IMG/VR virus record: IMGVR_UViG_3300036715_004471 | Location: 124,001-188,000 of that record | Length of the DNA stretch: 64,000 bases | Strand: one strand, 5' to 3' | Part shown: positions 1 through 30,039 of the stretch, piece by piece | Layout of the letters: each line of letters opens with the position of its first letter | Position numbering within the stretch: the first letter of the stretch is position 1 | Translations under genes and position numbers: made by a program | Notes under the pieces: model-generated | Database searches by the model: none | What the model was told of the DNA's origin: nothing | Seen by the model: only the letters and a program-made list of their open reading frames with translations

Positions 1-423
1 CAACGGGGATGGGTCGCTCTCCGTTAGGGCGCGGTAGCTATCTGCTACCGCCTCGCGGTGTCTTGCGACCCGCTTGACTACGCCAGCCGGGAAGGCTGGA
101 TGGGAAGCGCACCATTGCGCTTCGCCCGGCTAGCTCATCAGGGAGCGTCGCCGGTATCTCACCACAATTAGTGCGATTGATGGGCTCCCCCTATTCTGAT
201 TGATGTGCTCAATCTCCCCTAGCTCGGGGCTCGGCAGCCCTCGGCATCGATCTTGCATCTTGCAATCTTCGTGCCAGTCGTATCAGTCCATTCAATATAT
301 TGGTCCGACCTTTGCATATTGCAATCTCTAGACCATATCGTCAATTCTGTGAAAACAGAATTGGTCTTGGCATATTCAATGCAATATGCAAAGAGAGTGC
401 CAAGGTAAAAAGGAAACGCGAAA

Positions 424-443
424 GGGGAGCCCGAAGGCTCCCC
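424..443 (-). terminator. Intrinsic terminator hairpin (8-bp GC stem, UUCG loop on minus strand)
   Basis: ggggagcc-cgaa-ggctcccc. On the minus strand it is followed by a T-rich run and lies just downstream of ORF 463..672. Confidence 0.7.
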
Positions 444-462
444 GCGACTGGCACGGATCTTG

Positions 463-672
463 CTAGAGAGAAGCAATCGCTAGCATGGCAACAAGCTCCG
501 CGCGATCATCAGGATCCCAACCGGGGAGATCCAGATCCCAGAACCATGCCGGGGCGAGATCGCACAGATTCGACGTTACCTCGTCGAAAGCCGCATCGTC
601 ATCGGTCGACGTGGCATGGTAAGTGTAGAGCGCGGCGAGGATATGTTCGACGGTGGTGCACATACTCCACAC
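463..672 (-). CDS. Hypothetical small acidic protein
   Basis: 69-aa ORF in the GC-rich segment followed by a terminator hairpin; true start uncertain. Confidence 0.5.
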   Translation of the reverse strand: MWSMCTTVEHILAALYTYHATSTDDDAAFDEVTSNLCDLAPAWFWDLDLPGWDPDDRAELVAMLAIASL

Positions 673-780
673 GCAAAGCGCAGGAAGATGGGCATTGGAT
701 GGGTTTTACAGTCAGAACGGAAGCGCCCGTTCTCCCCCTCGACGGGGAATATTGGGGCGCTTCCTAGTTGTCGCCGCCCC

Positions 781-969
781 TCAGTTGATGGGGTCGATCC
801 CGTCGAAGTTGACTTCCTTCTCGCGCTCCGCGAGGGTCAGCCGCTCGCGCTTGGCACGCCGCTTGTCCTTGCCGCGGATCTCGCCCGTGAGCTTGGCATC
901 GGCGCGCATGTCGCGCGTCTGCGACTTGATCAGGGAATCCAGCTCCGAACCCGACGAACGCTTCTTCAT
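781..969 (-). CDS. Hypothetical small basic protein (MKKRSSGSELDSL..., 62 aa)
   Basis: Part of ORF 781..1056. The ATG at 969 is preceded by a GAGGGA RBS-like sequence, and codons are GC3-rich. Confidence 0.6.
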   Translation of the reverse strand: MKKRSSGSELDSLIKSQTRDMRADAKLTGEIRGKDKRRAKRERLTLAEREKEVNFDGIDPIN

Positions 970-1122
970 GATGATCCCTCGAATCCTTCGAAAGATTGGT
1001 TGCTTAGAAACGCCTGGGACGGAAAAACCCGTCTTCCAAGCGGGTTGTCCAGGCATCGAACCGAAGCCAGTAATCGAGCAGCTTATCCAGCATACCCGAC
1101 GCCTGGCTCTGGTCTGGATGGG

Positions 1123-1398
1123 TCACAGCATCCCCGCCGCCGAGGCGACGACGAGCACCACGGTCCCGACGATCCACACGATGAGACCCTTCCACTGTCC
1201 GATCCAGATCGACACCACAGCCAGTGCCGTCCCGGCAATGGTGATGGGTACCTCCTGCGGGGCGAGCGACATGCGCCTGGCGCCGAGCAGCACCATGAGC
1301 GCGACCAGCGCCACCGTGCCGAAGAACCACACCGCGATACCCTTGCCCTTGCCGATGAAAAGGGCGACCAGATTGAGAGCGAGAACGAGGAGAGCCAT
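1123..1398 (-). CDS. Hypothetical small membrane protein (about 4 hydrophobic segments)
   Basis: Part of ORF 1123..1545. The ATG at 1398 is preceded by GAAGG, and the product is very hydrophobic. Confidence 0.6.
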   Translation of the reverse strand: MALLVLALNLVALFIGKGKGIAVWFFGTVALVALMVLLGARRMSLAPQEVPITIAGTALAVVSIWIGQWKGLIVWIVGTVVLVVASAAGML

Positions 1399-1557
1399 GA
1401 ACTTGCCTTCGGTCAGTGCAGGATGGGTTGGACCACCAGCGCGGCAGTCGCCGCGGCATAGCCAATGCCACCGAGCCAACGCCAGCGGGCGGTGAAGCCA
1501 TAGAAGCCCACCGCCCAAACCAACATCAGAGTACAGGGGGTCCATCTTGGATCTGGG

Positions 1558-1725
1558 CTACTTGCCCACCACGATGGGCTCCTGCCCCTCCCTCTGCCAG
1601 GTGCCCGACCCACCAGCGATGGTAGTCTGCATCAGGAGGCTCGCGGCGCGACGGCGCGCGATGGGGCTGTCCTCGACCTGGACGGTGGTGGTCTTGCCGG
1701 CGATGGTGGTGGTGAGGGTGATCAT
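1558..1725 (-). CDS. Hypothetical 55-aa protein (MITLTTTIAGKTTTVQVED...), not in the ORF track
   Basis: AGGAGG RBS 7 nt upstream of the ATG, GC3-rich codons, TAG stop. Confidence 0.6.
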   Translation of the reverse strand: MITLTTTIAGKTTTVQVEDSPIARRRAASLLMQTTIAGGSGTWQREGQEPIVVGK

Positions 1726-2443
1726 GGTCCTGCCTCCTACCTCTGGTAGATGGGCTTGGGATAGACGACCGTGATCCCGACCCGCTTGGAATAGCGAACC
1801 AGCTCGCCAAACGTGGCTTGTGCCCGACGTTCACCGTCTTTGGTGTCATGATGGGCACTGATCGCCCAGTAGCTAGGGCTGATCTGAGCCGAAACCACGA
1901 TGATCGCCTTGGGTGACATAAGTATTCTTATTTCCTTACCTTGATGGGATAAAGAAAGAAAAAAGATGTCGATGGGTAGTCGAAGAGTTTTCTTTTCCCT
2001 TTTACTAACACCTTGAGAGATGGGTCGAGGGTTAGGGGCAGCAGTTCGGGTGGTACGGTGGGGCTGTAAAAGGTGGGTGATGGGTCCGCGTTGGCACGAC
2101 TCTTGCCTCCCAAATAGGGGTAATCTAATAACTAATTACATCTAAAAATGTATATGCGACACATTAATACAAATACAAAGCAAATAATCAACATTAAACC
2201 ACCCTATTTGAAATTAAATGGGGTATTTCATCTTTCTATCAATTACATTCACTCAGAATATAATCAAGCATCTTATCGCATTACATAAAGAACAATTCTC
2301 AAGATTGAGCATATAGTTCTTAATGAGCTAAGTGGGGATGGTTATGGGAGGTTGGTGGTTAATCTTGCGTTTAATCGGCATATAATAATTGGGATATGGC
2401 TTGGCGACATTTTTCGCACTAGCTATATAAGGAGATCTTCTCG

Positions 2444-3175
2444 ATGAAATTCTCTTCATTCTTATTCAGGGTCATATGTGGTTTGCTGTTATTGGTAACT
2501 ACGGCAAACTGTTGTTCAGGTTTTAACCATAGAGCGGAGGCGCCGGCGGGCAAACCGGCATATTTATTAGATAGCACGGTAGCGTTGGTGACGGGGAGTC
2601 CTGTTAATGAGTTTCAATATTACACATATTGTGCTGGGGTATGGATTTCTCCCGATCAATTTTTGACGGCGCACCACTGTATTATTCATGAAGAATATGA
2701 AACTAATATGATGGGGAAGATGGTTAGGTTTAAGACTCGTCGTGAAGTGAGTATTAGTAAGAATGAATTAACGGTGAGTGATCCGCATTATGGAGTAGTA
2801 GTAGCGATAGATTCTTTGCATGATTTAGCTTTAGTTAAGTCTGTAGATTTGGGATTGGAGCATTCTGTGGCAAAAATCAAGGAATCTGCTGTAGAGGTTG
2901 GGGAGGGAGTTAAGATAGTGGGGCACACTAGTGGATTAACTTATACTTATATAGTTGGGGTGGTATCAGCTATTAGGGTAGATTTCCCTGAGGATGGGGA
3001 TCATTATTTTCAGGTTTCGACGCCGGGGTATAAGGGGAATTCTGGTGGTGGATTATTTGATAATGATGGTAATTTGATGGGAATCTGTTCTAGTTTATTT
3101 AGAGGGGCGCCGAATGTAATTTTGTTTATTCACAAGGATGAGATGGTTAAGTTTTTGAGAGAGAATCAGATATAA
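2444..3175 (+). CDS. Trypsin-like (S1) serine protease with N-terminal signal/lipoprotein peptide
   Basis: Catalytic motifs TAHH, DLALV and GNSGG; hydrophobic N-terminus with Cys; AAGGAG RBS. Confidence 0.85.
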   Translation: MKFSSFLFRVICGLLLLVTTANCCSGFNHRAEAPAGKPAYLLDSTVALVTGSPVNEFQYYTYCAGVWISPDQFLTAHHCIIHEEYETNMMGKMVRFKTRREVSISKNELTVSDPHYGVVVAIDSLHDLALVKSVDLGLEHSVAKIKESAVEVGEGVKIVGHTSGLTYTYIVGVVSAIRVDFPEDGDHYFQVSTPGYKGNSGGGLFDNDGNLMGICSSLFRGAPNVILFIHKDEMVKFLRENQI

Positions 3176-3498
3176 GCTTTTAGTTTGGATAATCTTACAG
3201 CCACATCTTTCGCATTATTGGGGGAGATGTGGTTTGCATTTGGTAGATTATCCACGATAATTTTATCTTTTAGTTCTAGGGAATAGGTATTAGAGTTTAT
3301 GGCGAGGATTAGGTTATAGCCGGCTTGGGAGTCATCGGTTAATTCGAAATCTTTATTGAAATAGAAAGCCAGGACGAACAATTCATCTTTGAAGAAGCTA
3401 TGGTAGACTTTGCAATGTTCGCAGAAGGCGATATTAGGGATGAATGAGGTATTGAGTCTTTGTTCACAGAAGACGCAGGAGCGATTGAGAGTTTTCAT
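3166..3498 (-). CDS. CxxC zinc-ribbon family protein with C-terminal tag (RLSKLKAYI)
   Basis: CVFC and CEHC motifs; shared C-terminal motif. Confidence 0.75.
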   Translation of the reverse strand: MKTLNRSCVFCEQRLNTSFIPNIAFCEHCKVYHSFFKDELFVLAFYFNKDFELTDDSQAGYNLILAINSNTYSLELKDKIIVDNLPNANHISPNNAKDVAVRLSKLKAYI

Positions 3499-3884
3499 AG
3501 GAAAACCTTTTGATTCATGATACGTTTAACGAAGTCTTTAGCATTTTGCGGATTTATGGATGGGGGATGATCCATTTTAAAAATTGATATGGATTCAGCA
3601 TCAAGATATACTTGGGTTCGTTTAACTTCCAGCATTTCCAAGGTTTTATGAATAAGATCGATATTGATTAGGTATCTTGGGAAAGAATATTGATTTATTA
3701 GGAAACCAATCATTACTAATTTGCCGGGGACTCCATTGGGGGAATTTTCCTGATCGACCACATGGTTAACTTGGATTGGACAGTTATTACAATAGTATAT
3801 TTTATTGAAATCGAAGTATGTATTTCCGCTGCCCATATTATGGTTACAGAAGATGCAATTGAACTGTGTGGGGAAGAGGGTCAT
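3495..3884 (-). CDS. CxxC zinc-ribbon family protein with C-terminal tag (RIMNQKVFL)
   Basis: CIFC and CNNC motifs; 4-bp start/stop overlaps with neighbours. Confidence 0.75.
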   Translation of the reverse strand: MTLFPTQFNCIFCNHNMGSGNTYFDFNKIYYCNNCPIQVNHVVDQENSPNGVPGKLVMIGFLINQYSFPRYLINIDLIHKTLEMLEVKRTQVYLDAESISIFKMDHPPSINPQNAKDFVKRIMNQKVFL

Positions 3885-4207
3885 GAGAAAGCTTTTTGCT
3901 TTAATAAACGCTTTAGATATTGATGTGCTCCTTGTGGGGAGAGGTTAGGAACTTGGGACAATTGCAGAATGCACCGGTCTTTTCCATCTTGTTTATAGAG
4001 GGCGCAGCGATTTAAAATTGTATTTATATTGATGGAATATCGGGATCCTTTTTCATAAAGGAGGAAATCAAAGCTTATGGGGGTTTGATTACGGATATCG
4101 AAATTGTAAGAAACTTGAATGGGGCAATGCAAGCAAGTTAAGGAATAGCAGGGATATTTGGTATATACGCGATTAGATAATTGATTATTACAAAACTGAC
4201 ACTTCAA
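3881..4207 (-). CDS. CxxC zinc-ribbon family protein with C-terminal tag (RLLKQKAFS)
   Basis: CQFC and CLHC motifs. Likely TTG start at 4207 after GAGG; the ORF track extends it to 4321. Confidence 0.7.
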   Translation of the reverse strand: MKCQFCNNQLSNRVYTKYPCYSLTCLHCPIQVSYNFDIRNQTPISFDFLLYEKGSRYSININTILNRCALYKQDGKDRCILQLSQVPNLSPQGAHQYLKRLLKQKAFS

Positions 4208-4230
4208 TGGGCAACCTCTTTGCAGGGTTA

Positions 4231-4551
4231 TTAGGTAAATAGTAAATACAGGGAAAGCTTTTCTTTTAACTTTTCCAATTTGGGGAAATCCAGCTCCATA
4301 ATTTTTGGAATAGCCAGACACATTTTAGGATCTGTGGGCTCATAATAATAGAATGAGCATTGTTTCTCGAAATTAACCTCAAGGGAAGTATAATTATCGA
4401 GATAAACAACAATATGTTCCACTTTTTTATTGGTGGATTTTAATGAGAAAAAGTGGGCGGCGCTTTTGGCGCAGGTGCGATTGACACTTTGGTTAAAGGT
4501 TCTATTTTTTAATTTATTGTAGCAGATGGGACAGTGCGAGAGATCCTGCAT
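4231..4551 (-). CDS. CxxC zinc-ribbon family protein with C-terminal tag (KLSLYLLFT)
   Basis: CPIC motif and later C...H; shared C-terminal motif. Confidence 0.75.
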   Translation of the reverse strand: MQDLSHCPICYNKLKNRTFNQSVNRTCAKSAAHFFSLKSTNKKVEHIVVYLDNYTSLEVNFEKQCSFYYYEPTDPKMCLAIPKIMELDFPKLEKLKEKLSLYLLFT

Positions 4552-4572
4552 ACAGTATATATAACTTGAATT

Positions 4573-4926
4573 TTAGCTGAAGATAATGCACAGCTTTAAT
4601 TTGTTATACAGAGATTTTAAGTTAGAAAAATTTGGTTCAAAAAATGGAAGGATAATGGGATTATTTTCTATCATCTTACCATGCCAACGAGTGATAGAGA
4701 TATATTTCTTGTCTAAATTCCAACTTATCTCGTGTTGGTAATCGCCTCCCACCAGATAGATATCTCTAATGTTATCATCTTCGCCTGGAACAGATTCTAT
4801 ATACAGGCGATGATTTAATCTTCTCTTACAAGATTTGCGCAAGACAGTCTTGTTTGCATTAAGAGATGCCAAGTAATCATTTACCATTGGATCTCTACAT
4901 ACAGGGCACAAAGAGGGCATTTGCAT
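4573..4926 (-). CDS. CxxC zinc-ribbon family protein with C-terminal tag (KLKLCIIFS)
   Basis: CPVC motif and CKRRLNH; shared C-terminal motif. Confidence 0.75.
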   Translation of the reverse strand: MQMPSLCPVCRDPMVNDYLASLNANKTVLRKSCKRRLNHRLYIESVPGEDDNIRDIYLVGGDYQHEISWNLDKKYISITRWHGKMIENNPIILPFFEPNFSNLKSLYNKLKLCIIFS

Positions 4927-5695
4927 GTCTTTTTATAATCGCGTAAATTGTTGGAATAGATACTTCAAATAGCGAAGATAGTTCTTTATTTTTCATACCT
5001 TCATTGTAGTATTTTATCAATTCTATTTCTTTATCAAAAGAAAGTTTAATTTTTGATTTCGACATTTTTTGTCTAGTATCATCTGATTTTGCTTTACCTT
5101 TTTTAGGGATAGACATTTTTTCTTTTGTCTCTTCGCTAAGTTTTGATCCTAGTTTAGCTTCGGACATTGCTTGTCTAGTATCTAATGATCTTTTAACTCC
5201 TAGATTAGACTGAGATATTTTCTTTTTCCATTCTTCAGTTTTGGGGCGTCCTTTATGAGCTTTAGAAGCCTTCTCTCGCCACTCATCTGAATGTGGATTC
5301 AGTTTACCAATATTACTTTCAGAAATCTTCTTTCTTGAATCTTCAGAATGATGCTTTCCGTACATTGGCTGTTGTTCAGCGGGCAATCCAGTATTCCAAG
5401 CGGAATCGCCACCAGGTGCCAGATTATATCCCTTTTCTTTATTACGACTATCATATTGAATGATTAGTTGCTTTTCTGCCTCATTAGCATCTTCTTGTGT
5501 TAATGAGGTACAAATCACTTCATAAGTAAAATTATCAATCCCATACTTATTCATTGCTTTATGAATATATTGGTTAGTTTTGTCAGGATTTCTTCCAAAA
5601 TACTTATGCTGACGCCATCTTTCTTTTTCCTTATTAGACTGACCAATATAAACTTTTCCATTTAGTTGGTTTGTTATTTTATACAGATAAATCAT
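4895..5695 (-). mobile_element. Free-standing GIY-YIG homing endonuclease with NUMOD3 repeats
   Basis: IYLYKITNQLNGKVYIGQS, GYNL motif, and repeated (H)SE(D/E)xxxK(I/M)S units. Confidence 0.9.
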
Positions 5696-5733
5696 AATAT
5701 CTCCTCACAGAGTATATTATACTATGCGTATAA

Positions 5734-6081
5734 TTAAGAAAAAAGTAAATAGGTTTTGATTTTTTGTTTGATCTTATCGAGATTAGACAAATCAGTAGAG
5801 ATGATGCTTGGCACCTTGATGGGACGACGTTCGTTTGCTTTAGTCCACAAACTAGTGGTGTTATCTTGATAATTGAATTGTGCAAAGAACTTGTGGGCGC
5901 CGTCTTTGATTCTCAACTTCATAATTATTAATTCGCCGGCAGCCGATATTCTTTTTGCCAATAGATGATCCTCTTGTCGACAAACTAAATCCACATTCTT
6001 GGATGCAAAGACAGATTCTTCTGTTAATTGAGCGTTACAAATTGGACAAACATTGGACATAAATACCTTTGTATTACACAT
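5734..6081 (-). CDS. CxxC zinc-ribbon family protein with C-terminal tag (KIKTYLLFS)
   Basis: CPIC motif and CRQEDH; shared C-terminal motif. Confidence 0.75.
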   Translation of the reverse strand: MCNTKVFMSNVCPICNAQLTEESVFASKNVDLVCRQEDHLLAKRISAAGELIIMKLRIKDGAHKFFAQFNYQDNTTSLWTKANERRPIKVPSIISTDLSNLDKIKQKIKTYLLFS

Positions 6082-8242: not shown

Positions 8243-8301
8243 AATGGGCGTCCTTTCAAGGCACACAACGCAGGTAATATTTGTAGGGCGCCGATGGGAC
8301 G

Positions 8302-10902: not shown

Positions 10903-11442
10903 ATGACAAATAGATTGAGCACTCAAGAATATTACGATCTCATTAAAAAATTGATTGAACAGCAGTATACTGATGATTCAGAACCGGAATCAACCACATC
11001 TTATTCTGATGGGTGGATTCCTGCTTCACCTGAAATTAAACAAAAAATGAAGCTACTGGCGGATGAAGGAACTGTTGATTTAACTAATGTAAAAAGCAAC
11101 AAAATTAAAGAACTTATTATTCAATCCAAAAATAAGAGCGTTAAGAGTGGAATCAAAATTGGCGATTTTCTAATAAAAATTACACGTTCTGAATGTTACA
11201 ATCCTGATATGTCAGACTTAATTGTTGACATTTGCGTTTATGAAGAACAACATAAAACCAAATCAGGGGCACCGGCTAAATTATTATTCAAAATAGATAC
11301 TATTAAAGATAGTAGATTCACACAATGTTCTTGGAACAGTTATTTTAATCAATTCAAATCTGCTAAAAATGTACCGATTAACATATTGGTAGAAATTGTT
11401 AGGTGGCTCCGGGCGGTTAAAAAATTAACTGCATTTCTTTGA
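10903..11442 (+). CDS. Hypothetical protein with C-terminal tag (AVKKLTAFL), paralog of 6109..6542
   Basis: Likely ATG at 10903; shares an ID...D.RF....W...L.EI...KL..FL pattern with the frameshifted gene. Confidence 0.75.
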   Translation: MTNRLSTQEYYDLIKKLIEQQYTDDSEPESTTSYSDGWIPASPEIKQKMKLLADEGTVDLTNVKSNKIKELIIQSKNKSVKSGIKIGDFLIKITRSECYNPDMSDLIVDICVYEEQHKTKSGAPAKLLFKIDTIKDSRFTQCSWNSYFNQFKSAKNVPINILVEIVRWLRAVKKLTAFL

Positions 11443-11588
11443 TGATCGTACATACGGATCATGCGCACGGGCGAGCAGTATGTCAAGGTCTCTTATCTTA
11501 AAAGATATTAAAAGGTACGCCCCCACTATATGGTCTCATTCCCCCTATAAGATCCCCCAAGTTTTTGTCGAGAGACAGCTCACAAAAA

Positions 11589-11620
11589 GAAAAAGAATCA
11601 GAGCGCTCTGATTCTTTTTC
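11589..11620. repeat. Perfect 32-bp palindrome with no loop, between convergent genes
   Basis: gaaaaagaatcagagc|gctctgattctttttc. Confidence 0.9.
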
Positions 11621-11701
11621 GGTAATTACCAACCGTCATATATTGTTGTATATTCTATCGAACTTACTAACCTGATAGTGCCCTTACTTAACTGCCTTTT
11701 A

Positions 11702-12178
11702 TTAAATCAACTGGTTTCCTGACAATATTTGTGCTAATCCTGATGATGTTATGATATCTTTTTGTAATGTAGGATCTGCATGTGCTCTATTATCTTGATG
11801 TTCTGCTCTCCATCTATTCATTGCTGATTGAGTTCTTGGTCCGAAAACACCATCTGCTTTACTGCCGCTCATACTATCTGGATATAATTTGATTAAAGCT
11901 TTTTGTAATTCTGGATTAATGCGTGATCCATGAGAAATTGGTTTATATACTTGTTCTGAATGTTTCTCTTTAGCTTCTTGAGCTGGATATGGAAGTGGTT
12001 TATTACCTTTTATTTGAGTAGAAGGTAGCTCTACTCCAAAACCAGGATTAAATGAATTTAGTTCATATCCACCATGATCCATTTGTGCTAAGTTTTCAAG
12101 AAAAGCTCTTCTACCACCGTAGACAGCTAATCTTTCAAACAATTCTGCTTTTTTGAGGAGAGCCTTTGTGTCAACCAT
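11702..12178 (-). CDS. Protein with shared N-terminal leader and C-terminal peptidoglycan-binding-like domain
   Basis: LQKALIKL...ADGVFGPRTQSAMNRW resembles the PG_binding_1 signature DGxFGxxT. Confidence 0.65.
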   Translation of the reverse strand: MVDTKALLKKAELFERLAVYGGRRAFLENLAQMDHGGYELNSFNPGFGVELPSTQIKGNKPLPYPAQEAKEKHSEQVYKPISHGSRINPELQKALIKLYPDSMSGSKADGVFGPRTQSAMNRWRAEHQDNRAHADPTLQKDIITSSGLAQILSGNQLI

Positions 12179-12211
12179 TTTAGTTTAATCCTTCTTTAAT
12201 ACACTACTTTT

Positions 12212-12385
12212 TTATACACTATTATGCATGTTTAGTAAATGTTCAGTCGCTCTTTTGATTTGTTTATCTTGCTCCGATTGTTCATCTGCCTGGGCTAATG
12301 CATACAAGAATCCCTTGCGAATACCATATGTAGCTAATTTTTCAAATAAATTTGCTTTTATTAGAATAAGTTTTGTGTCAACCAT
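12212..12385 (-). CDS. 57-aa protein sharing the 32-aa leader of 11702..12178; not in the ORF track
   Basis: MVDTKLILIKANLFEKLATYGIRKGFLYALAQ...; GAAGG RBS. Confidence 0.75.
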   Translation of the reverse strand: MVDTKLILIKANLFEKLATYGIRKGFLYALAQADEQSEQDKQIKRATEHLLNMHNSV

Positions 12386-12429
12386 TTGTACCTTCTTTAA
12401 TTATTATGCCGTATAAGTCAGACATTTAA

Positions 12430-12951
12430 TCAACTTCTATTAATCCAATCCGGATTATTATACTCATTATCACAATTAGCATCATGAACACCACTGAGAT
12501 CAAATGGGTTGATTAACATTTGTTGTAGCTGTATTGGCAAATGCTTGAAACAATTACACTCACAACCACAATGACATTTTCTACATGTAATTGTTTTGCA
12601 AGAAATGTTTTTAATATCCGCCAGCAAATTCCATATATTAAGCCTCTCCACAGGTAAGGAGAGGGTAGGGGGACCGTAATTATTTTGTAAAACGGTAACC
12701 ATCCCCTGCTTGACAAACATTACAACGTCCGCAAGTTGGCGGTTGGTAAAATCTTGCAAAGTTTGACGCAGGACCAAAATCCTCTGATTATTCAAGTGGA
12801 CTAATACTGGATAATTTGGATCCACTGATACACGTAGATCAAATTCTGCATCGCTCATAACTTCATTGAATTCCAATTGTGTTTTCAAATTGTTTAAAGT
12901 TATTGCCGAGATGTCGGCGTTAATAAAAATGATTGCAGAGGGTAATTCCAT
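12430..12951 (-). CDS. Hypothetical protein with Cys-rich segment
   Basis: Likely start at MELPSAIIF; contains CKTITCRKCHCGCECNC. Confidence 0.6.
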   Translation of the reverse strand: MELPSAIIFINADISAITLNNLKTQLEFNEVMSDAEFDLRVSVDPNYPVLVHLNNQRILVLRQTLQDFTNRQLADVVMFVKQGMVTVLQNNYGPPTLSLPVERLNIWNLLADIKNISCKTITCRKCHCGCECNCFKHLPIQLQQMLINPFDLSGVHDANCDNEYNNPDWINRS

Positions 12952-12973
12952 AATTATATGGAATTTTATCCAC

Positions 12974-13001
12974 TTGACGATAAATTGTATGTAATTATGA
13001 T
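12974..13001 (+). promoter_or_regulatory. Sigma70-like promoter TTGACG-N16-TATGAT upstream of dUTPase
   Basis: Consensus match in an intergenic position at an operon head. Confidence 0.65.
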
Positions 13002-13025
13002 AGTTGGATAAATTCGGAGGAAATA

Positions 13026-13622
13026 ATGCTAAATGCACCATGGAATCAACCAGAAGGAATTATGGGATTACAAACCCCAACCTTTAGGTTTGCTGTTAGA
13101 GAAGATTTGAAAGATACCGGAGATTTATTTGTTCCTTCAAGGGGAACTCCTAAATCAACGGGTTGGGATGTAAAAGCTGCTTGGGATGATAGAAAGTCTA
13201 AAGTCATTGCCTTCGGAGAATATGTAAAAATTCCTTTAGGATTTAGAACATTTGCTCCCGCCGGTTGGTGGTATGAACTAAAACCTCGTTCTTCTACTTT
13301 TGGCAAAAAGAAGTTACATTCTCTTTATGGAACTATTGATGAAGATTATGAGGGGCAATTAATATTCGCTTGCCAGTGGTTACCAGATTTTGAATTACAA
13401 GGTCACGGTAATGCTTGGGATGATGGTACAATATCTTTTGTTGTTACAAACGATTATAATCCCAAATTAACAATAGATTTTGGCGAAGCCATTGGGCAAA
13501 TCATTCCAGTTAAACGCCAAGAAATGCAAATTGAAAGTATTAGCAACGAAGAATTTGATCGCTTGTGTAAAGAAAGAGCTGCAATTAGAGGAGCGGGCGG
13601 ATTTGGTTCCACCGGAAAATAA
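13026..13622 (+). CDS. dut: Trimeric dUTPase
   Basis: Motifs STGWD, PRSS, GTIDEDYEG, IGQ and RGAGGFGSTG. Confidence 0.93.
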   Translation: MLNAPWNQPEGIMGLQTPTFRFAVREDLKDTGDLFVPSRGTPKSTGWDVKAAWDDRKSKVIAFGEYVKIPLGFRTFAPAGWWYELKPRSSTFGKKKLHSLYGTIDEDYEGQLIFACQWLPDFELQGHGNAWDDGTISFVVTNDYNPKLTIDFGEAIGQIIPVKRQEMQIESISNEEFDRLCKERAAIRGAGGFGSTGK

Positions 13623-14455
13623 TGAATAAGAACTATGATTTTGATCCAGTAAAAGATACGAAACAAGTGTTCTCCGAATACGAAGATTATGATTTTGATA
13701 TGTTAAAAGACCTTAGAATGATAAGAGCAAACCATAGACCTGAGCCCAAGTTCATAAAAACTAATGCGCCTATTATATCAGAAGAAGATAAGATAGCGTT
13801 AGAGAAGTTTTTTAATGATCATCCAGAATTGAAGAGCAAAGAATCTCCACATGATTTGGCGAAATCGAATGCGTCACGCGGCTTCAAACTACGCTATGAT
13901 GTAGGCTCTGATGAGTTTTATCCCAACGAAGCTTGGATTCAAACTTTTACAGGAAAGAGATTTACTCCAACCAATCCAAATCCAGAGTCTATTGTCATTT
14001 TAGACATTGCTCATGCATTATCTATGCAATGTAGATTTAGTGGTCATGTAAAGAAATTCTATTCAGTAGCCCAGCATAGTGTTCTTGTAAGTTATCTATG
14101 CAACCAAGAGGATTCTCTTTGGGGATTGCTTCATGATGCTACTGAGGCATATCTAGTAGATGTTCCTAGTCCTTTGAAGAGATCCGGCAAGTTTGATGCT
14201 TATTTAGAATTCGAAAAGAATATGCAAACAGCAATTTGCAAGAGATTTGGATTAGAAGATAAAGAGCCGCCCTCTGTTAAAAAAGCCGATTCATTGCTTT
14301 TAGCTACTGAGGCTAGAGATTTAATGTCTCCATTAAGAGAAGATTGGGTTTATCCGGTTAGACCACTTCCTATGAAAATAGATCCTTTGCTTCCAGAAGA
14401 GGCAGAACTATTGTTCCTTAATAGGTTTTACGATCTGATTGATGAATTAAAGTGA
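13622..14455 (+). CDS. HD-domain nucleotide phosphohydrolase (YfbR/YfdR-like) with N-terminal extension
   Basis: RFSGH, YSVAQHSV and LLHDATEAY motifs. Confidence 0.85.
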   Translation: MNKNYDFDPVKDTKQVFSEYEDYDFDMLKDLRMIRANHRPEPKFIKTNAPIISEEDKIALEKFFNDHPELKSKESPHDLAKSNASRGFKLRYDVGSDEFYPNEAWIQTFTGKRFTPTNPNPESIVILDIAHALSMQCRFSGHVKKFYSVAQHSVLVSYLCNQEDSLWGLLHDATEAYLVDVPSPLKRSGKFDAYLEFEKNMQTAICKRFGLEDKEPPSVKKADSLLLATEARDLMSPLREDWVYPVRPLPMKIDPLLPEEAELLFLNRFYDLIDELK

Positions 14456-14467
14456 TATAAATACTCT

Positions 14468-14722
14468 ATGGATCAAAAAGAATTAAAAAAGTTGGCTGAG
14501 CCAAAACCAAAGTATTATTATGATGTTAAAATAGAATGCATGCTTCCGGCTACTCTTCTCTATAGAGTTTTAGCGGAAGATCCTCAACAAGCATCAATGA
14601 TGATTAAAGGGCTAAGTCCAACGGGAGTAAAATATCGTTTGCCAGGTCGCAAAGAAATTAAAATGATGATTTATGATGCGGGTAGCACCATGATTAGGTT
14701 AGTAAAAAACCTACTAGGATAA
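14468..14722 (+). CDS. Hypothetical protein
   Basis: 84-aa ORF within a plus-strand operon. Confidence 0.65.
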   Translation: MDQKELKKLAEPKPKYYYDVKIECMLPATLLYRVLAEDPQQASMMIKGLSPTGVKYRLPGRKEIKMMIYDAGSTMIRLVKNLLG

Positions 14723-14724
14723 CA

Positions 14725-15207
14725 ATGATAGATAGAAAATATCTAAAAGTAAAGCCTAGCAATTTAGATGGTAGTGGATTGTTTACTACTGTCAAAATAA
14801 ATGCCAGATATCCTATTATAGAAGTAACTGGCGATATTTTTGATTTATCTACTGTGCCTGATCATCCAGCTGTAATACAGGTTACTCCTAAGTTATTTAT
14901 AGGACCATCTGGAGGACCTGATGATTATATTAATCATAGTTGTAATCCTAATTGTTTTATCTCTATTATAGGAAATAGGGCAATTTTATATTCGTTGTAT
15001 GTAATTTCTCCAGACACAGAATTAACATTTGATTATTCTAGCGGCTCATCTGAATCATTAGATAGTTGGAAAATGAATTGTTCTTGTGGCGCAGTAACTT
15101 GTCGTAAAATCATCAGTGGATTTCAATATTTGACAGATGAGCAAAAGAAAGTTTTGCTGGATTTAAAGGCGGTTCCTCCATTTATCACGGATGGAATATT
15201 TAGATGA
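14725..15207 (+). CDS. SET-domain lysine methyltransferase with post-SET motif
   Basis: GSGLF, INHSCNPN, ELTFDY and CSCGAVTCR motifs. Confidence 0.9.
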   Translation: MIDRKYLKVKPSNLDGSGLFTTVKINARYPIIEVTGDIFDLSTVPDHPAVIQVTPKLFIGPSGGPDDYINHSCNPNCFISIIGNRAILYSLYVISPDTELTFDYSSGSSESLDSWKMNCSCGAVTCRKIISGFQYLTDEQKKVLLDLKAVPPFITDGIFR

Positions 15208-15482
15208 TCAAAACTCCTCATACTAAGATCTTAAGAATAATTGAAGGATTTCGTAGACTAGTGGATAATGTTTGTTCTTATGATCCATCATCTATTAATG
15301 AAATCATAGGAGATTTTAATATCTTCAATGAAGCGTGCGATGAATTAAGAGATGAATTAACAGCTAAAAAAAACTCTCTTGATGAAGTTGAAGAATTAGA
15401 AAGCAAGCAAAAGATTATTCAGCACGTTGATGAAATGAAGCCTATTATAGAGAAAATGATGAGTTTGAAAGCGTTTTGGTAA
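15204..15482 (+). CDS. Helical hypothetical protein with C-terminal tag (KMMSLKAFW)
   Basis: Operon position; shared C-terminal motif. Confidence 0.7.
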   Translation: MIKTPHTKILRIIEGFRRLVDNVCSYDPSSINEIIGDFNIFNEACDELRDELTAKKNSLDEVEELESKQKIIQHVDEMKPIIEKMMSLKAFW

Positions 15483-15483
15483 A

Positions 15484-15765
15484 ATGAGACCATTTGAACC
15501 TATGAGCGGAAAAAGTAAATACGAAGCAATAGTTGATATTATAGATGATTTTTATGCCGATTTCAAAGATCAGGGGTATTTAGATCGAAGCTGTATCAAC
15601 GAATACAAGATGATTATTCAAATCTATAACTCATACAAAAAGAAAGTTGAATCAGAAAAAGATATACCAAAAGATGAATTAGACGGAATGATGAGTTTAA
15701 TTGAAAAAGTAGAAAAAATTAAACCTGAAGCGGACAGGTTACTTGCAATGAAATGTTTTTGGTAA
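15484..15765 (+). CDS. Helical hypothetical protein with C-terminal tag (RLLAMKCFW)
   Basis: Operon position; shared C-terminal motif. Confidence 0.7.
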   Translation: MRPFEPMSGKSKYEAIVDIIDDFYADFKDQGYLDRSCINEYKMIIQIYNSYKKKVESEKDIPKDELDGMMSLIEKVEKIKPEADRLLAMKCFW

Positions 15766-16022
15766 TAAGTGATAGATTTTTAGAAGATAATATAATAGTT
15801 GCTTTAAATCAGTTGGGCTTTGAAATAAAACAAAGCCCAACTGGACCAAGTGTTTATACATTTTATAAGAATGGTGTCTATGCAGGTGTGAGCTATTGTA
15901 ACACTAATGATTGTGAAGATAGAAAATTCATTCTACATGATCTATTTAATTCTCATTATAATGGAGCAATTATACCGAAAGAGGATTTAAAAAGAATGTT
16001 AAAAATGAAAGCTTTTTGGTGA
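15753..16022 (+). CDS. Hypothetical protein with C-terminal tag (RMLKMKAFW)
   Basis: Operon position; shared C-terminal motif. Confidence 0.7.
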   Translation: MFLVISDRFLEDNIIVALNQLGFEIKQSPTGPSVYTFYKNGVYAGVSYCNTNDCEDRKFILHDLFNSHYNGAIIPKEDLKRMLKMKAFW

Positions 16023-16025
16023 ATT

Positions 16026-16661
16026 ATGTCAGGACTTCAATATTATATTGTAGATACGGAAACTACAGGGTTAAAAGCCAACTTCCATGAAGTTACAGAG
16101 GTAGGCATTATCCGCGCCAAAGATCGTGTTCAAATTCATAGATGCGTTAAATGCGTGTATCCAGAACGCGCCAATTTTGATGCGTTAGCTATTACTAAGA
16201 AAACTATGGCAGATCTTGAAAGAGGGCATGAAAAATCTGATGTAATAGCAGAATGTAATAAGTTTTTTGAAGAAGATGGCACTTCACCTGCACATAGAGT
16301 TATTGTGGCTCACAATGCTCCTTTTGATAGAAGATTTCTTCATGCTATGTGGGAGAGCGAAGGTCTAGAATTTCCTGCCCATTTATGGTTGGATACTATA
16401 TCTTTAACTAAAGAGTATGCCAAGAAAATTGGTTTAATCAAGCCCAAGGTAGGTTTACACGCCGCTTGTGATATAGTAGGAATAAAGAAACTATCAGATG
16501 CTCACAATGCAAAAGTAGATAGTAGAAACTGTTATTTATTACATCGTAGTTTGACGGAAGAGAAAAAGATAGACTATTTACCTTTCATAAAAACAGCTGT
16601 CCATACAATAGCAACCAATCAAGATTATGAAGGATTAGATTTATCATTACTTGATGATTAA
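16026..16661 (+). CDS. DEDDh 3'-5' exonuclease (DnaQ-like)
   Basis: VDTETTG, AHNAPFD and AHNAKVD motifs. Confidence 0.9.
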   Translation: MSGLQYYIVDTETTGLKANFHEVTEVGIIRAKDRVQIHRCVKCVYPERANFDALAITKKTMADLERGHEKSDVIAECNKFFEEDGTSPAHRVIVAHNAPFDRRFLHAMWESEGLEFPAHLWLDTISLTKEYAKKIGLIKPKVGLHAACDIVGIKKLSDAHNAKVDSRNCYLLHRSLTEEKKIDYLPFIKTAVHTIATNQDYEGLDLSLLDD

Positions 16662-17317
16662 TGAAAACGCCAAGCCTAGAAAGATTTCATTTTAATATAG
16701 ATAGGTCTATGCGCCTAGCGGAATCCTATGCCGAAATAAAAGAACTGTCGTTCATATTAAAAAGCTGTAGGATGAAACCATATTCTATTTTCTACGATAA
16801 AGAATTACCAAGACTTAAATTGTATAGGCATTGGTTTGATGAGTTTGGTAATTCTTTATATATTACAAAACGCAAAAGAATTAAGTTAATCTATAATGAT
16901 CTTCTCTTGAGAAAAAAAGATATTATTTGCACTGATTTATATTATGGTTTATCTCTTGACAAATTAGTCAAGATAAGTAAACTACTACATATAGTGATAG
17001 GTAAGAATGAAGATAATCAAGATCATTATTTGATGATTACTTTTTATGGTATAGATGGTTACCTTAAATCTTATTTATACGATGGAGAATGGAAACAAGT
17101 GTCTCCGTTCATGTTAGGGATGAAAAGATTAAAGAACATACATAAGTATGTCGACATTAAGTATTTTCATCAATTGAAGAATTTAGAAAATTTCATGACC
17201 CCTTGCCTCTCGACCGACGAGTGGATAGGATCATTGACACAAGCTTCGGCAGGAGAATTCGTCAAAATTCTCAAAAAGAAATACGAAATAGACTTTTCGT
17301 TTTTGATATCAAATTGA
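16661..17317 (+). CDS. Hypothetical protein
   Basis: 218-aa ORF whose start overlaps the previous stop codon. Confidence 0.65.
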   Translation: MKTPSLERFHFNIDRSMRLAESYAEIKELSFILKSCRMKPYSIFYDKELPRLKLYRHWFDEFGNSLYITKRKRIKLIYNDLLLRKKDIICTDLYYGLSLDKLVKISKLLHIVIGKNEDNQDHYLMITFYGIDGYLKSYLYDGEWKQVSPFMLGMKRLKNIHKYVDIKYFHQLKNLENFMTPCLSTDEWIGSLTQASAGEFVKILKKKYEIDFSFLISN

Positions 17318-17334
17318 GGTAAGATACAATAATC

Positions 17335-17550
17335 ATGACTAATAGAGATAGATTAGAGTTACAGGGTGAAGTTGTTGATGCAAACAAAGGTAAATTCAAA
17401 GTTAAGGTTAATGATGCATTAATCGTTCTTTGTACCTTAAGTGGTAAGATTAGAGTAAATTCTGTCAAAATCCTAATAGGAGATAAGGTGACGGTGGAAG
17501 TATCAGAGTATGATACTTCTCAAGGTCGTATTATCTACAGGCACAAATAA
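17335..17550 (+). CDS. infA: Translation initiation factor IF-1
   Basis: 71 aa; LSGKIRVNSVKILIGDKVTVEVSEYDTSQGRIIYR matches the IF-1 pattern. Confidence 0.92.
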   Translation: MTNRDRLELQGEVVDANKGKFKVKVNDALIVLCTLSGKIRVNSVKILIGDKVTVEVSEYDTSQGRIIYRHK

Positions 17551-17554
17551 GTCT

Positions 17555-18466
17555 TCAGGCTTCTTTACCAAATTGATCGAGTAAGCTATCTATTCTTTGT
17601 AGCAAGGCTACTCTGCCTGATTGTGGTTTTTGTGGAGCGTATGGTTGTGGAGAAGGCGGTTGTTTAATGGCTGCCATTTGAACCGGTGCTTGGTGATCAG
17701 GCACCGGCTTTTTATCTTTTCCATATTGTCTCATTTGTGTAGAATCAGCAATAGCACCTGCCAAATTAGGATTTTCCCTCAGTTTTTTCATAGTAGAGGG
17801 TATTTTCTTACCATTAGGTAAAGTTACGATAATATCATCATCTACAAAACGAGCATTCAAAGCATATTCTGTATGAGCAGCTGCTTGCCCCTTATGAGCA
17901 TAAGTATATGGCTGTAAAGGATCCCCACTAGCACCTTGCCATCCGCCAAAACTTACATCATCTGTGCTGGCGTTTGCTCCTGGTTCAGTAATTTCTTTAC
18001 CATGACCACTAATTAATCCAGGATTTTTATGTTTAGCCAGTTCTTGATCTGTTAAGCTGCTATAGTAGACGGCGGCATCAGATTGACTAATTCTATTCTT
18101 AACTACATCTTTAGCTGAATAATGTTTACCATCTAATGGGCTGGTGTAACCTGTTCCTGATAATGGGGCAGCTCTGACTTTAGTTTTGGCGGCATCATAA
18201 ATCTGTTTAGACATTTTAGGAGTAGGTATTACCATACCAAAATGATTGGCAATTCTCTGGGCTGTTACCGGAGTTACAGTTACCCTAAAACCATCAACAG
18301 TTAAATAATCTGCCATAGTTTTATAGGTTATCTTAGTTCCACCAGGACCATCAACAGTGACAGGGACCAAATTTTTAGGTGGACCTTGTTTGATGGTGGC
18401 TTGATAAACTAATTCCTCCCTGGCAGGACCCGGAGGTAGTTTCATGAATTCATCTTTGAAGCTCAT
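17555..18466 (-). CDS. Hypothetical protein, paralog of 18473..19192
   Basis: Shares R...V..A, AQ..A, GK.I, GW/GF and Q...H...HT(E/D)Y with its neighbour. Confidence 0.7.
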   Translation of the reverse strand: MSFKDEFMKLPPGPAREELVYQATIKQGPPKNLVPVTVDGPGGTKITYKTMADYLTVDGFRVTVTPVTAQRIANHFGMVIPTPKMSKQIYDAAKTKVRAAPLSGTGYTSPLDGKHYSAKDVVKNRISQSDAAVYYSSLTDQELAKHKNPGLISGHGKEITEPGANASTDDVSFGGWQGASGDPLQPYTYAHKGQAAAHTEYALNARFVDDDIIVTLPNGKKIPSTMKKLRENPNLAGAIADSTQMRQYGKDKKPVPDHQAPVQMAAIKQPPSPQPYAPQKPQSGRVALLQRIDSLLDQFGKEA

Positions 18467-18472
18467 TTGAGA

Positions 18473-19192
18473 TTAAACCCCTGGCTGGCGTGTAAAGTGT
18501 AATACTCCTTCATAACTTAGGAGTGGTGCTAAAGTTGAATTTGTCATAACATCTATAACATTCATAGATTGACCATCTACTTCACAAGTGTTACTCATAA
18601 GAATAAGTGTTTGGCTATAATCGGTATGTGATCTGTCATGTCTTGTACCAATAGTTTGCCACATTTTTAATCCGCCTGGTCCAATATATGGGGCAGATTT
18701 ATCGTAAAAACCATAGTTAATAGCGCTAGTAGAAGTAGTTAAACGATTACTCAAAATCCAAGCTTTACCACAATCACGAAATAATCCAGTCTTTCCAGCA
18801 CGTTTACTTTCAACTGAATTATTCCATTGTTTTGATTTAGAAGTTGTTACCATATCCGGACCGGCTGGCAATGTAGTTGCTCTTACAACAACTTCGGCGG
18901 CTTTATATGCAAGATCACTTACCTTAGAAGTAATAAAAGAAGCACTCATTAAATCTGCACATTTTTGCGCCAAAGTAGCAGAAACTTGAAATCTGAATCT
19001 TGTTCCATCATCTAATTCAACACGCGCAGCATCATCACAAACTTGAAAAGTAGCCGTGTGACCATTGATAGTTGAAACAATTGGTAACCAATTACATACT
19101 ACTAATCCATTACTAACAGCATCCAAAACTGCTTGATCTCTTGCGGGAGACGGATTTTCTGGCAATGAATTTATCCAAGATTGTGCGTCCAT
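18473..19192 (-). CDS. Hypothetical protein, paralog of 17555..18466
   Basis: WQTIGTRHDRSHTDYSQ motif; aligns by eye with its neighbour. Confidence 0.7.
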   Translation of the reverse strand: MDAQSWINSLPENPSPARDQAVLDAVSNGLVVCNWLPIVSTINGHTATFQVCDDAARVELDDGTRFRFQVSATLAQKCADLMSASFITSKVSDLAYKAAEVVVRATTLPAGPDMVTTSKSKQWNNSVESKRAGKTGLFRDCGKAWILSNRLTTSTSAINYGFYDKSAPYIGPGGLKMWQTIGTRHDRSHTDYSQTLILMSNTCEVDGQSMNVIDVMTNSTLAPLLSYEGVLHFTRQPGV

Positions 19193-19223
19193 GATTTCCT
19201 CATATCATTTTTAATATGCGGTC

Positions 19224-19251
19224 TTGACATTTATTTCCGCACATTTATACT
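19224..19251 (+). promoter_or_regulatory. Sigma70-like promoter TTGACA-N16-TATACT upstream of IMPDH/GMPR
   Basis: Near-consensus match in a divergent intergenic region. Confidence 0.75.
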
Positions 19252-19289
19252 ATGTAAGCTATAAGTATGCTCAAATATGGAGAAGATAA

Positions 19290-20336: not shown

Positions 20337-20338
20337 TT

Positions 20339-22163: not shown

Positions 22164-22178
22164 AACATGAATATCAAA

Positions 22179-22565: not shown

Positions 22566-22580
22566 GCCTAGAATACTTAA

Positions 22581-30038: not shown

Positions 30039-30039
30039 A

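Follow-up and report, generated by a model that had tools for sequence, protein, structure and literature searches.

The analysed window is a 64,000-nt stretch covering bases 124,001-188,000 of the 446,541-bp contig IMGVR_UViG_3300036715_004471, a huge-phage genome referred to here as G000. The hexamer GATGGG occurs 25 times in this window, always on the + strand, and no CCCATC is found on the + strand anywhere in the 64 kb. The features of the window are as follows (positions are those of the window).

1..2100 (+): last 2.1 kb of a GC-rich, motif-dense arm (59 % GC), with 17 GATGGG sites at 8, 99, 179, 687, 698, 787, 1117, 1243, 1422, 1573, 1660, 1749, 1850, 1943, 1971, 2019 and 2079 and no reverse site; part of the dense arm at genome 100-126.1 kb
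687..692 (+): junction-type site, reading CCCATC-N23-ATG on the coding (-) strand, upstream of the small - strand ORF that starts at 663
1117..1122 (+): junction-type site; the stop codon (TGA, 1123-1125) of the upstream - strand ORF abuts CCCATC, followed by N23 and an ATG at 1091-1093
1422..1427 (+): junction-type site, 23 nt upstream of an in-frame ATG (1396-1398) of the - strand ORF 1123-1545
1749..1754 (+): junction-type site, 23 nt upstream of the start (1723-1725) of the - strand ORF 1558-1725, with a GGAGG ribosome-binding site between
1943..1948 (+): junction-type site, 23 nt upstream of the start (1917-1919) of the - strand ORF 1737-1919
2085..2443 (no strand): the boundary, an AT-rich non-coding spacer between the first arm gene (- strand) and the + strand protease gene, where GC drops from about 0.63 to about 0.35 within roughly 300 nt; its position is syntenic in the relatives, and the contig of the source sample breaks at 2323-2336
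2100..4600 (+): polar G-run zone on the AT-rich side, spanning a + strand gene and - strand ORFs
2444..3175 (+): trypsin-like peptidase gene containing three forward GATGGG sites (2710, 2993, 3076)
3559..3564 (+): right-tail GATGGG site in AT-rich DNA
4525..4530 (+): right-tail GATGGG site
5818..5823 (+): right-tail GATGGG site
8293..8298 (+): right-tail GATGGG site
11008..11013 (+): last GATGGG site of the right tail
11014..64000 (no strand): start of the motif-free conserved core, which holds replication genes, tubulin and a sigma factor, with no GATGGG on either strand

Distribution and polarity of GATGGG

The first-pass annotation had listed these sites, and we found that its observation holds, every position being exact. 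A shuffle test pooling both strands and the whole window looks unimpressive (25 found, 19 expected). However, scaling the 10.9 sites expected per 26.1 kb of dense arm gives about 0.9 sites per strand in the first 2.1 kb, where 17 are seen. A further 8 sites lie in the 10.9 kb beyond the boundary compared to about 2.3 expected. The first 2 kb are 59 % GC while the rest of the window is about 33 %. Bases 2001-4000 have a GC skew of +0.30 and the ratio of TGGGG to CCCCA is 17:0 in the first 2.5 kb beyond the boundary, confirming the earlier remark that this DNA is G-rich on the + strand regardless of gene direction. The relative G001 shows the same pattern (15:0).

The left end of the window is not a sequence end, and the motif continues leftward for about 277 kb. 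The whole genome has 352 forward and 4 reverse sites, and GATGGG is its most strand-asymmetric hexamer (z = 18). Flanking positions carry no information and one-mismatch variants behave normally, so that the signal is the exact hexamer only. Site density and GC content (31 % to 63 %) rise together toward a sharp boundary at window position ~2100 and then collapse. We compared forward sites to expectation by zone and found 180 observed against 11 expected in the dense arm, 104 against 15 in the mid arm, 60 against 18 in the far arm and 0 against 13 in the core. Reverse sites number 4 overall compared to about 106 expected. In the ~158-kb conserved core the two strands carry 0 and 1 sites where about 13 and 29 are expected.

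The annotation had noted that its inference would fail if codon usage (Pro-Ile, CCC-ATC) on the minus strand explained the counts. We addressed this question with synonymous-codon shuffles within each ORF and found 105 forward sites against 34 +/- 4 in the dense arm, 51 against 19 in the mid arm and 34 against 15 in the far arm, with reverse sites totalling 1 against about 45. The codon-aware null is thus rejected for both the excess and the avoidance. Sites fall in all three frames and in spacers. Polarity follows the genome axis and not gene direction, with + strand ORFs carrying 17 forward and 0 reverse sites at the same density as - strand ORFs; the three sites inside the + strand peptidase gene show this directly.

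Individual sites are under purifying selection. Of the G000 sites in DNA alignable with G001, 26 of 51 are kept, compared to 18.5 % for all hexamers, a 2.8-fold difference. Spacing is more even than random (coefficient of variation of 0.72 against 0.99 for random placement), with a median of 116 bp in both G000 and G001 and a depletion of gaps under 60 bp.

Conservation and variation among relatives

The same architecture is found at the same syntenic boundary in independent assemblies. The relatives G001, G004 and G010 share the bare-hexamer system, with forward to reverse ratios of 360:7, 246:4 and 273:7 respectively, and two core fragments have 0:0. The relatives G002, G003 and G005 share the architecture but embed an ATGGG core in longer cassettes of 10-45 nt upstream of genes, at a fixed 24 nt from start codons. 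Total core avoidance occurs only in genomes where the bare hexamer is the arm motif.

The CAT of a start codon lies 23-24 nt to the left of the motif in 39 of 111 sites in G003, 15 of 60 in G002, 33 of 350 in G000 and 36 of 359 in G001, an exact spacing in four diverged genomes. About 10-16 % of dense-arm sites in G000 and G001 lie in a stop-CCCATC-N23-ATG junction, with a ribosome-binding site within the N23 in G000, while about 85-90 % of the sites in these two genomes are not near starts. G003, G002 and G005 have one long cassette per gene, with hairpins. In G005 the sigma-70-like promoter in the cassette faces away from the ORFs.

Interpretation of the polar signal

The interpretation offered by the first-pass annotation is partly supported by these results. 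It had inferred an oriented protein-binding signal by analogy with KOPS, Chi or parS-like arrays. GATGGG is indeed an oriented, selected DNA signal and not a by-product of codon usage or composition, which puts it in the same logical class as KOPS or Chi. The idea that the motif is seeded at the left end and fades with distance is not supported: what had been seen is the steep right-hand edge of a genome-scale gradient that peaks at genome 100-126 kb and decays leftward over about 277 kb. A parS- or tubC/parC-type segregation array, a compact cluster of direct repeats next to the adaptor and filament genes, is unlikely since the sites spread over 277 kb and lie about 40 kb from the tubulin gene, which is at 45005-46414 inside the motif-free core.

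We hypothesize that GATGGG is an orientation-dependent signal laid along the genome axis and read by a machine that tracks along the DNA, such as a helicase-nuclease, a translocase or a replisome-blocking protein, in the class of Chi, KOPS and Ter sites. We consider this reading tentative (probability of about 0.4). What our data demonstrate is that the sites are co-oriented over a ~277-kb accessory domain whatever the direction of the genes they sit in, that their density climbs roughly as 1/distance to a saturating one site per ~116 bp at a fixed, syntenic boundary, that the wrong orientation is purged from the whole genome (4 sites left) and that both orientations are purged from the conserved core (0 and 1 left). 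The reader protein, the mechanism and the nature of the boundary are, in contrast, inferences from sequence alone. In this view the boundary would be where the tracking enzyme enters or must be stopped, the most likely candidate being the genome end that enters the cell first, or the terminus of replication or packaging. Each site would act with low probability, so that many are needed close to the entry point and progressively fewer are worth keeping further in, while a site facing the other way, or one placed in the core, would misdirect or block the same machine and be lethal enough to be eliminated. The coincident GC gradient and gene turnover may be consequences or companions of this end-proximal activity, through recombination or early expression in a GC-rich host, and are not read as the cause of the motif.

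Comparison with the closest systems shows both similarities and differences. Like KOPS (GGGNAGGG) and the SpoIIIE SRS, GATGGG is a short G-rich asymmetric word co-oriented along the axis regardless of genes, with a density rising toward one point and a counter-selected non-permissive orientation. An FtsK/SpoIIIE-family ATPase (332 aa) is encoded at genome 306.6-307.6 kb, but it matches only the motor domain, with no detectable gamma (KOPS-reading, winged-helix) domain, and no reader protein was identified. GATGGG is a hexamer, its skew (99 %) is far stricter, it is confined to about 62 % of the genome and purged from the rest, and its polarity does not invert at the boundary as KOPS does at dif: 8 more sites follow in the same orientation, then none, with no CCCATC array.

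As for Chi sites and RecBCD-AddAB, an enzyme entering at the boundary and moving into the arm would meet 5'-GATGGG-3' from its 3' side, an orientation that is right if a DNA end lies there. The 1/distance decay fits a low-probability stop signal, and the site-rich arm is also where gene turnover is highest. However, reverse Chi is neutral in known systems while the reverse orientation is almost forbidden here, and density is 10-40 times that of any Chi. Avoidance of forward sites in the core is not predicted by simple Chi or KOPS models. The hexamer is neither enriched nor polar in G009, a Polyangiaceae MAG that represents a candidate host lineage only (135:131 in 400 kb against 101-140 expected). 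As in Tus-Ter or RTP-type polar fork traps, co-oriented asymmetric sites with many back-ups spread away from a fixed boundary, there a terminus; a wrongly oriented site would be lethal, which would explain avoidance in regions that forks must cross. The array differs in having hundreds of 6-bp sites instead of a few of about 23 bp and no opposite set, and no terminator protein was identified.

Alternatively, the motif may be the core of a gene-expression cassette (a promoter, a -10-like element or a 5'-leader signal of the arm genes) read by host RNA polymerase with a phage factor, such as the region-2-only sigma at 37127-37750. The specificity would have collapsed to the bare hexamer in the G000/G001 lineage while copies multiplied, as a mobile regulatory cassette of a hyperplastic early region resembling the PeSL cassettes of T4-type phages (PMC2839356, PMC4122927). 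The fixed distance to start codons looks like gene regulation, and the junction geometry would fit a -10 element with a leader of about 17 nt. A short strong promoter would explain avoidance of both orientations in the late core, the arm consists of small, fast-turning-over ORFs, and a sigma factor is present while no phage RNA polymerase was detected. PeSL cassettes, composites of a promoter and a stem-loop placed one per gene, are likewise repeated between small ORFs in hypervariable regions next to conserved core blocks, and the cassettes of G003 and G005 are per-gene and include hairpins. We nevertheless consider this reading unlikely, although it is the strongest of the alternatives. Orientation does not follow gene direction, most sites in G000 and G001 are not near starts and lie in all frames, one site per 116 bp is two to three per gene, no -10 or -35 partner appears on either strand, the cassette promoter of G005 faces away from the ORFs, and in G000 and G001 the unit is a bare hexamer without a sigma-70 consensus, mostly inside genes and actively excluded from the core.

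Two further readings remain possible but improbable. Polarity could be imposed by a host restriction system (Type III or Type ISP) that cuts only between inversely oriented asymmetric sites, the forward copies being harmless survivors or decoys. EcoP15I sites are co-oriented in phage T7, a non-palindromic hexamer is typical of such enzymes, the near elimination of reverse sites implies a large fitness cost per site as cleavage would give, and avoidance is limited to the lineage using the bare hexamer. The T7 sites are, however, at about chance frequency and evenly spread, and this reading does not explain the 6-16-fold enrichment of forward sites in the arm, their gradient, even spacing and conservation, their purge from the core or the longer motifs in relatives. 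Slightly less likely still, the sites could be targets of a strand-specific nicking endonuclease, giving T5-like single-strand interruptions confined to one strand of the arm. One-strand placement would avoid double-strand breaks, the depletion of sites closer than about 60 bp would avoid loss of short oligonucleotides, GC-rich surroundings would stabilise nicked DNA and several HNH endonuclease genes lie in the arm. But hundreds of sites would be far more than in any known nicked phage genome, and neither the gradient nor the cassette contexts are explained. Finally, a by-product of codon usage, GC-rich composition, a repeat family or a chimeric assembly might be suspected since most genes are on the - strand and the arm is GC-rich. 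This is refuted by the Markov and synonymous-shuffle nulls, the presence of sites in all frames and in intergenic DNA, the uninformative flanks and the recurrence of the architecture in at least 5 independent assemblies with a syntenic boundary.

Implications for huge-phage genomes

Polar architecture motifs (KOPS, Chi, Ter) are known for bacterial chromosomes, and we found no description of such a motif for a phage in full-text searches. The hexamer is unusual in its 99 % strand purity, a density graded over 277 kb, its exclusion from the core and a density that parallels a two-fold GC gradient inside one genome. The host-like GC arm makes IMG/VR label these records 'provirus', although G000 has no integrase or resolvase and G001 assembles as a circle; such gradients can therefore mislead viral-genome quality tools.

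It is conceivable, though doubtful on present evidence, that a clade of huge phages, probably infecting GC-rich myxobacteria, encodes position along its genome in two coupled gradients, GC content from 31 % to 63 % and an axis-polar hexamer, forming a viral counterpart of bacterial chromosome-architecture motifs. A tracking motor or nuclease would read them to find, protect or stop at one genome terminus, and the motif would act as a strict 'keep out' mark for the conserved core, with a reader specificity that evolves within the clade (GATGGG, CCGTTAnnnGATGGG, TGAATGGGAG, TTGACCGATGGGT). If the signal directs a tracking enzyme, it offers a handle on how half-megabase phage genomes are injected, replicated, protected or packaged directionally, and it would also help explain why their accessory genes concentrate in one hypervariable arm.

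Distribution of GATGGG along the genome

Every coordinate given in the first-pass annotation was found to be correct, and its observation of a strand-polarised GATGGG motif holds: the window contains 25 GATGGG sites on the + strand and none on the - strand. The first 2 kb are 59 % GC against about 33 % for the rest of the window, and bases 2001-4000 have a GC skew of +0.30. The interpretation offered in that annotation is only partly supported. The oriented character of the signal is confirmed, but the window is bases 124,001-188,000 of a single 446,541-bp contig listed in IMG/VR as a virus record, so that the 'left end' at which the motif appeared to be seeded is only the edge of the window. 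Genome-wide we counted 352 forward and 4 reverse sites. GATGGG is the most strand-asymmetric hexamer of the genome (z = 18), flanking positions carry no information, and all 18 one-mismatch variants behave normally. The exact hexamer is the unit.

The genome belongs to a huge tailed phage with 56 tRNA genes, all on the - strand, and about 80 % of its ORFs on the - strand. The window also encodes PhoH, ribonucleotide reductase, a DnaB-like helicase and a UvsW-like helicase. Searches for a T7-like or multisubunit RNA polymerase, and for an integrase or resolvase, detected none. The release factor is closest (44-56 % amino-acid identity) to those of Polyangiaceae such as Sorangium and Polyangium, myxobacteria of about 70 % GC, which provides a weak lead to the host. 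Further features of the genome are as follows.

Window 3166-4551 (-): four contiguous small Cys-rich ORFs (106-146 aa) next to the boundary described below, on a C-rich coding strand, with no Pfam family apart from a sub-threshold Radical SAM hit (E 0.0046) on one of them; possible zinc-ribbon DNA binders.
Window 4895-5695 (-): GIY-YIG/NUMOD3 homing-endonuclease gene.
Window 7157-8305 (-): class-I release factor (PCRF + RF-1 domains).
Window 14725-15207 (+): SET-domain protein, in a + strand block of the core.
Window 19290-20336 (+): IMP dehydrogenase/GMP reductase, in a + strand block of the core.
Window 37127-37750 (-): sigma factor with region 2 only, inside the motif-free core.
Window 45005-46414 (-): TubZ/PhuZ-like tubulin, inside the motif-free core.
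Genome 15230-15303 and 320811-320884: two tRNAs with anticodon CTA, which reads TAG.
Genome 256.6 kb: weak TerL match.
Genome 305280-307609 (-; 17280-19609 of locus L013 of this genome): FtsK/SpoIIIE-family ATPase (332 aa, motor domain only, genome 306.6-307.6 kb) overlapping by one base with a 443-aa Cys-rich ORF that has no Pfam match.

An FtsK/SpoIIIE-family ATPase is unusual for a tailed phage that also appears to have a terminase. Despite the release factor and the two tRNAs, ORF coverage gives no sign of recoding, since it is already 0.89 under code 11 and changes little (0.90) when TAG is read as sense.

GC content is 31-36 % over about 130-330 kb, creeps upward through the contig ends to about 50 % at 60-100 kb and 56-63 % at 100-126 kb, and then drops to about 35 % within roughly 300 nt at window ~2100. 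GATGGG density follows the same course. To estimate how far the counts depart from composition, we compared them with an order-1 Markov model.

Table. GATGGG sites by zone, observed / expected.
Dense arm (100-126.1 kb): forward 180 / 11; reverse 3 / 10
Mid arm (30-100 kb): forward 104 / 15; reverse 0 / 25
Far arm (295-446.5 kb plus 1-30 kb): forward 60 / 18; reverse 0 / 42
Core (137-295 kb): forward 0 / 13; reverse 1 / 29

Three things happen at once: one orientation is strongly enriched in the arm, the other is nearly eliminated everywhere, and both are eliminated from the core save for the one reverse site. Eight further forward sites trail 11 kb into the AT-rich side, against 2.3 expected. 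By our reading of the counts, density falls roughly as 1/distance after a saturated plateau of about 40 sites per 5 kb. The three reverse sites in the arm are not upstream of + strand starts. The extremes of the cumulative GC skew do not fall at the boundary and are dominated by gene-strand bias.

One explanation for such counts is codon usage, which the first-pass annotation had named as the possibility that would overturn its reading. We addressed this question by shuffling synonymous codons within each - strand ORF, keeping the protein sequence and the gene's own codon usage. Forward sites were 105 observed against 34 +/- 4 in the dense arm, 51 against 19 in the mid arm, 34 against 15 in the far arm and 3 against 11.6 in the core, the 3 being sites of the right tail, while the reverse orientation gave 1 against about 45 in total. 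The related genome G001 gives the same picture. Sites occupy all three frames and also spacers. Both the Markov models and the synonymous shuffles reject the codon-usage and composition explanation.

Individual sites also show signs of selection. Where this genome (G000) and G001 can be aligned, at about 70 % identity, 26 of 51 G000 sites are GATGGG at the aligned G001 position, while the figure for all hexamers is 18.5 %. In the dense arm the spacing is more even than random placement, with a coefficient of variation of 0.72 against 0.99 and none of 2000 simulations reaching the observed value. The median spacing is 116 bp in both genomes and gaps under 60 bp are strongly depleted.

Relatives and the syntenic boundary

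A tubulin search found 47 related IMG/VR loci. The relatives include genomes with the bare hexamer and others in which the polar word is longer and contains ATGGG.

Table. Polar word in G000 and related IMG/VR records (forward:reverse counts, or copies).
G000, this genome: GATGGG, 352:4
G001: bare hexamer, 360:7
G004: bare hexamer, 246:4
G010: bare hexamer, 273:7
G012 and G013, core fragments of the closest relatives: GATGGG, 0:0 in 191 kb
G003: CCGTTAnnnGATGGG, 79 copies
G002: TGAATGGGAG, 61:1
G005: GTTGACCGATGGGT, 43:0, inside a ~45-nt cassette

The relatives with a longer word keep the architecture, that is a sharp boundary, a GC-rich decaying arm and an AT-rich core, and the word differs between lineages (GATGGG, TGAATGGGAG and TTGACCGATGGGT). 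In G003, G002 and G005 the bare hexamer is not avoided in the core. Avoidance therefore tracks what is actually recognised. In the G005 arm (15000-20000 of its locus L156), each ~45-nt cassette reads TTGACC-N17-TAGAAT/TAGATT/TATATT on the + strand, a near-consensus sigma-70 promoter that faces away from the - strand ORF it precedes, with GATGGG forming the first six bases of the spacer. No known RNA family was found in the arm cassettes. G005 also carries, at about 325,975-327,122 (locus L155), about 50 copies of CCGTAACC in one orientation within about 1.1 kb, at 6-nt multiples, a dense tandem array unrelated in sequence to GATGGG.

The boundary is syntenic and lies just upstream of a + strand trypsin-like protease gene, which is followed by the release-factor gene. 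On its AT-rich side (window 2100-4600) lies a burst of polar G-runs, with TGGGG:CCCCA at 17:0 in 2.5 kb across a + strand gene and - strand ORFs. G001 shows the same (15:0), and G002 and G003 show a weaker version. The alignable fraction between G000 and G001 falls from about 0.9 in the core to 0.05-0.1 next to the boundary, although the arms remain collinear. The arm is the hypervariable part of the genome, and holds auxiliary genes (RtcB, RNA ligases, PurA, PRPP synthetase, several HNH endonucleases) and many small unknown ORFs. Integron-like cassette capture was considered and rejected, as no tyrosine or serine recombinase is present.

The same variability is seen between closer strains. 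In a strain 3-4 % divergent (sequencing run X4), the GIY-YIG/NUMOD3 gene is replaced by 271 other bases and window 404-763, including a small arm ORF, is replaced by 57 bases. In the source run (X1), the contig breaks at window 2323-2336, with an assembler depth of 13 for the contig covering the GC-rich side and 4-6 for contigs on the AT-rich side over window 1-6000. This could be GC bias, a terminal repeat or a replication copy-number step. IMG/VR classes G000, G002, G004, G005 and G010 as 'provirus', although no integrase or resolvase was found in G000 and G001 assembles with a 254-bp end overlap; the host-like GC arm probably misleads the classifier.

GC1, GC2, GC3 and spacer GC all rise toward the boundary in all four compared genomes. 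The GC gradient, from about 31 % to about 63 % with an abrupt drop at one point, recurs in G001, G002, G003 and G005 with different amplitudes. Accretion of GC-rich foreign DNA followed by amelioration was rejected as the sole cause, since orthologous segments 50-120 kb from the boundary are still 45-57 % GC in both G000 and G001 at about 70 % nucleotide identity. Local GC-biased conversion around each site was also rejected, as single far-arm sites show no kb-scale GC bump. These results favour, without proving, a position-dependent equilibrium maintained by recombination-linked bias or by selection for host-like early DNA, and argue against simple decay of recently captured DNA; the cause of the gradient is unresolved.

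Gene context and genome axis

Two lines of evidence point in opposite directions as to whether the motif serves gene expression. In all four compared genomes a subset of sites lies exactly 23-24 nt upstream of a start codon. In G000 these junctions read stop codon, CCCATC, 23 nt containing a ribosome-binding site, then ATG, and five of the 17 sites in the arm portion of the window are of this type (687, 1117, 1422, 1749 and 1943). In G003, G002 and G005 nearly every copy is such a per-gene cassette, which recalls the PeSL cassettes of T4-type hyperplastic regions (PMC2839356, PMC4122927).

For G000 and G001, however, only about 10-16 % of dense-arm sites, and essentially none further out, are near starts. 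A sigma-70 promoter context is absent, with no -10 or -35 partner on either strand. Upstream regions of core genes (genome 137-290 kb) are enriched in TGATATA (GATATA z = 6.1 in G000 and 8.4 in G001), a candidate core promoter element distinct from the arm motif. Decisively, orientation ignores gene direction. In reliably called AT-rich ORFs of the motif domain, + strand ORFs carry GATGGG on the + strand at the same density as - strand ORFs, with 8 per 21.7 kb against 30 per 132.6 kb in G000 and 9 per 23.9 kb against 58 per 143.8 kb in G001, and none of the + strand ORFs carries the reverse word. The + strand protease gene in the window holds three forward sites (2710, 2993, 3076). An RNA-level signal or a sense promoter would flip with the gene; this signal does not.

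A polar signal for a tracking machine as the tentative reading

Taken together, we consider that the best fit is a signal for a machine that tracks along DNA, of the Chi, KOPS or Ter class, although this reading remains tentative (probability about 0.4) and no reader protein is identified, the FtsK-like ATPase having no detectable gamma domain. Our analysis shows polarity with respect to the DNA axis, the exactness of the word, its saturating density next to one landmark and its scarcity in the wrong orientation anywhere and in either orientation in the core; that a tracking machine reads it, that misplaced sites are costly and that the boundary is the point of entry are inferred from sequence alone. 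A low per-site efficiency would explain why hundreds of sites are kept, and the same assumption would explain why the benefit, and hence the density, decays roughly hyperbolically away from the entry point. The orientation would be the active one for a Chi-type enzyme that enters at the boundary and moves into the arm.

None of the classical systems predicts every feature: Chi predicts a neutral reverse orientation, KOPS predicts a polarity flip and genome-wide presence, and Ter predicts few long sites. A polar role in a host chromosome was suggested by 100 consecutive + strand matches listed in a Polyangiaceae MAG, but 800 kb of that genome showed mixed samples, and direct counting gave 135:131 in 400 kb against 101-140 expected; the listing order was an artefact and the lead is rejected for that genome. 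Alternatively the motif may be the core of a promoter or expression cassette, which we regard as unlikely given its indifference to gene direction. Polarity driven by restriction appears less likely still, followed closely by nick sites, and an artefact is all but excluded. Literature searches on GATGGG, on GC gradients in phages and on polar motifs in phages found nothing relevant.

The pattern is real, much larger than the first-pass annotation reported, conserved and under strong selection, and it resembles known polar architecture motifs in logic while meeting the definition of none of them. In the reading that we tentatively prefer, the arm genes, transcribed away from the boundary, of host-like GC, small and variable, would suit first-entering early DNA.
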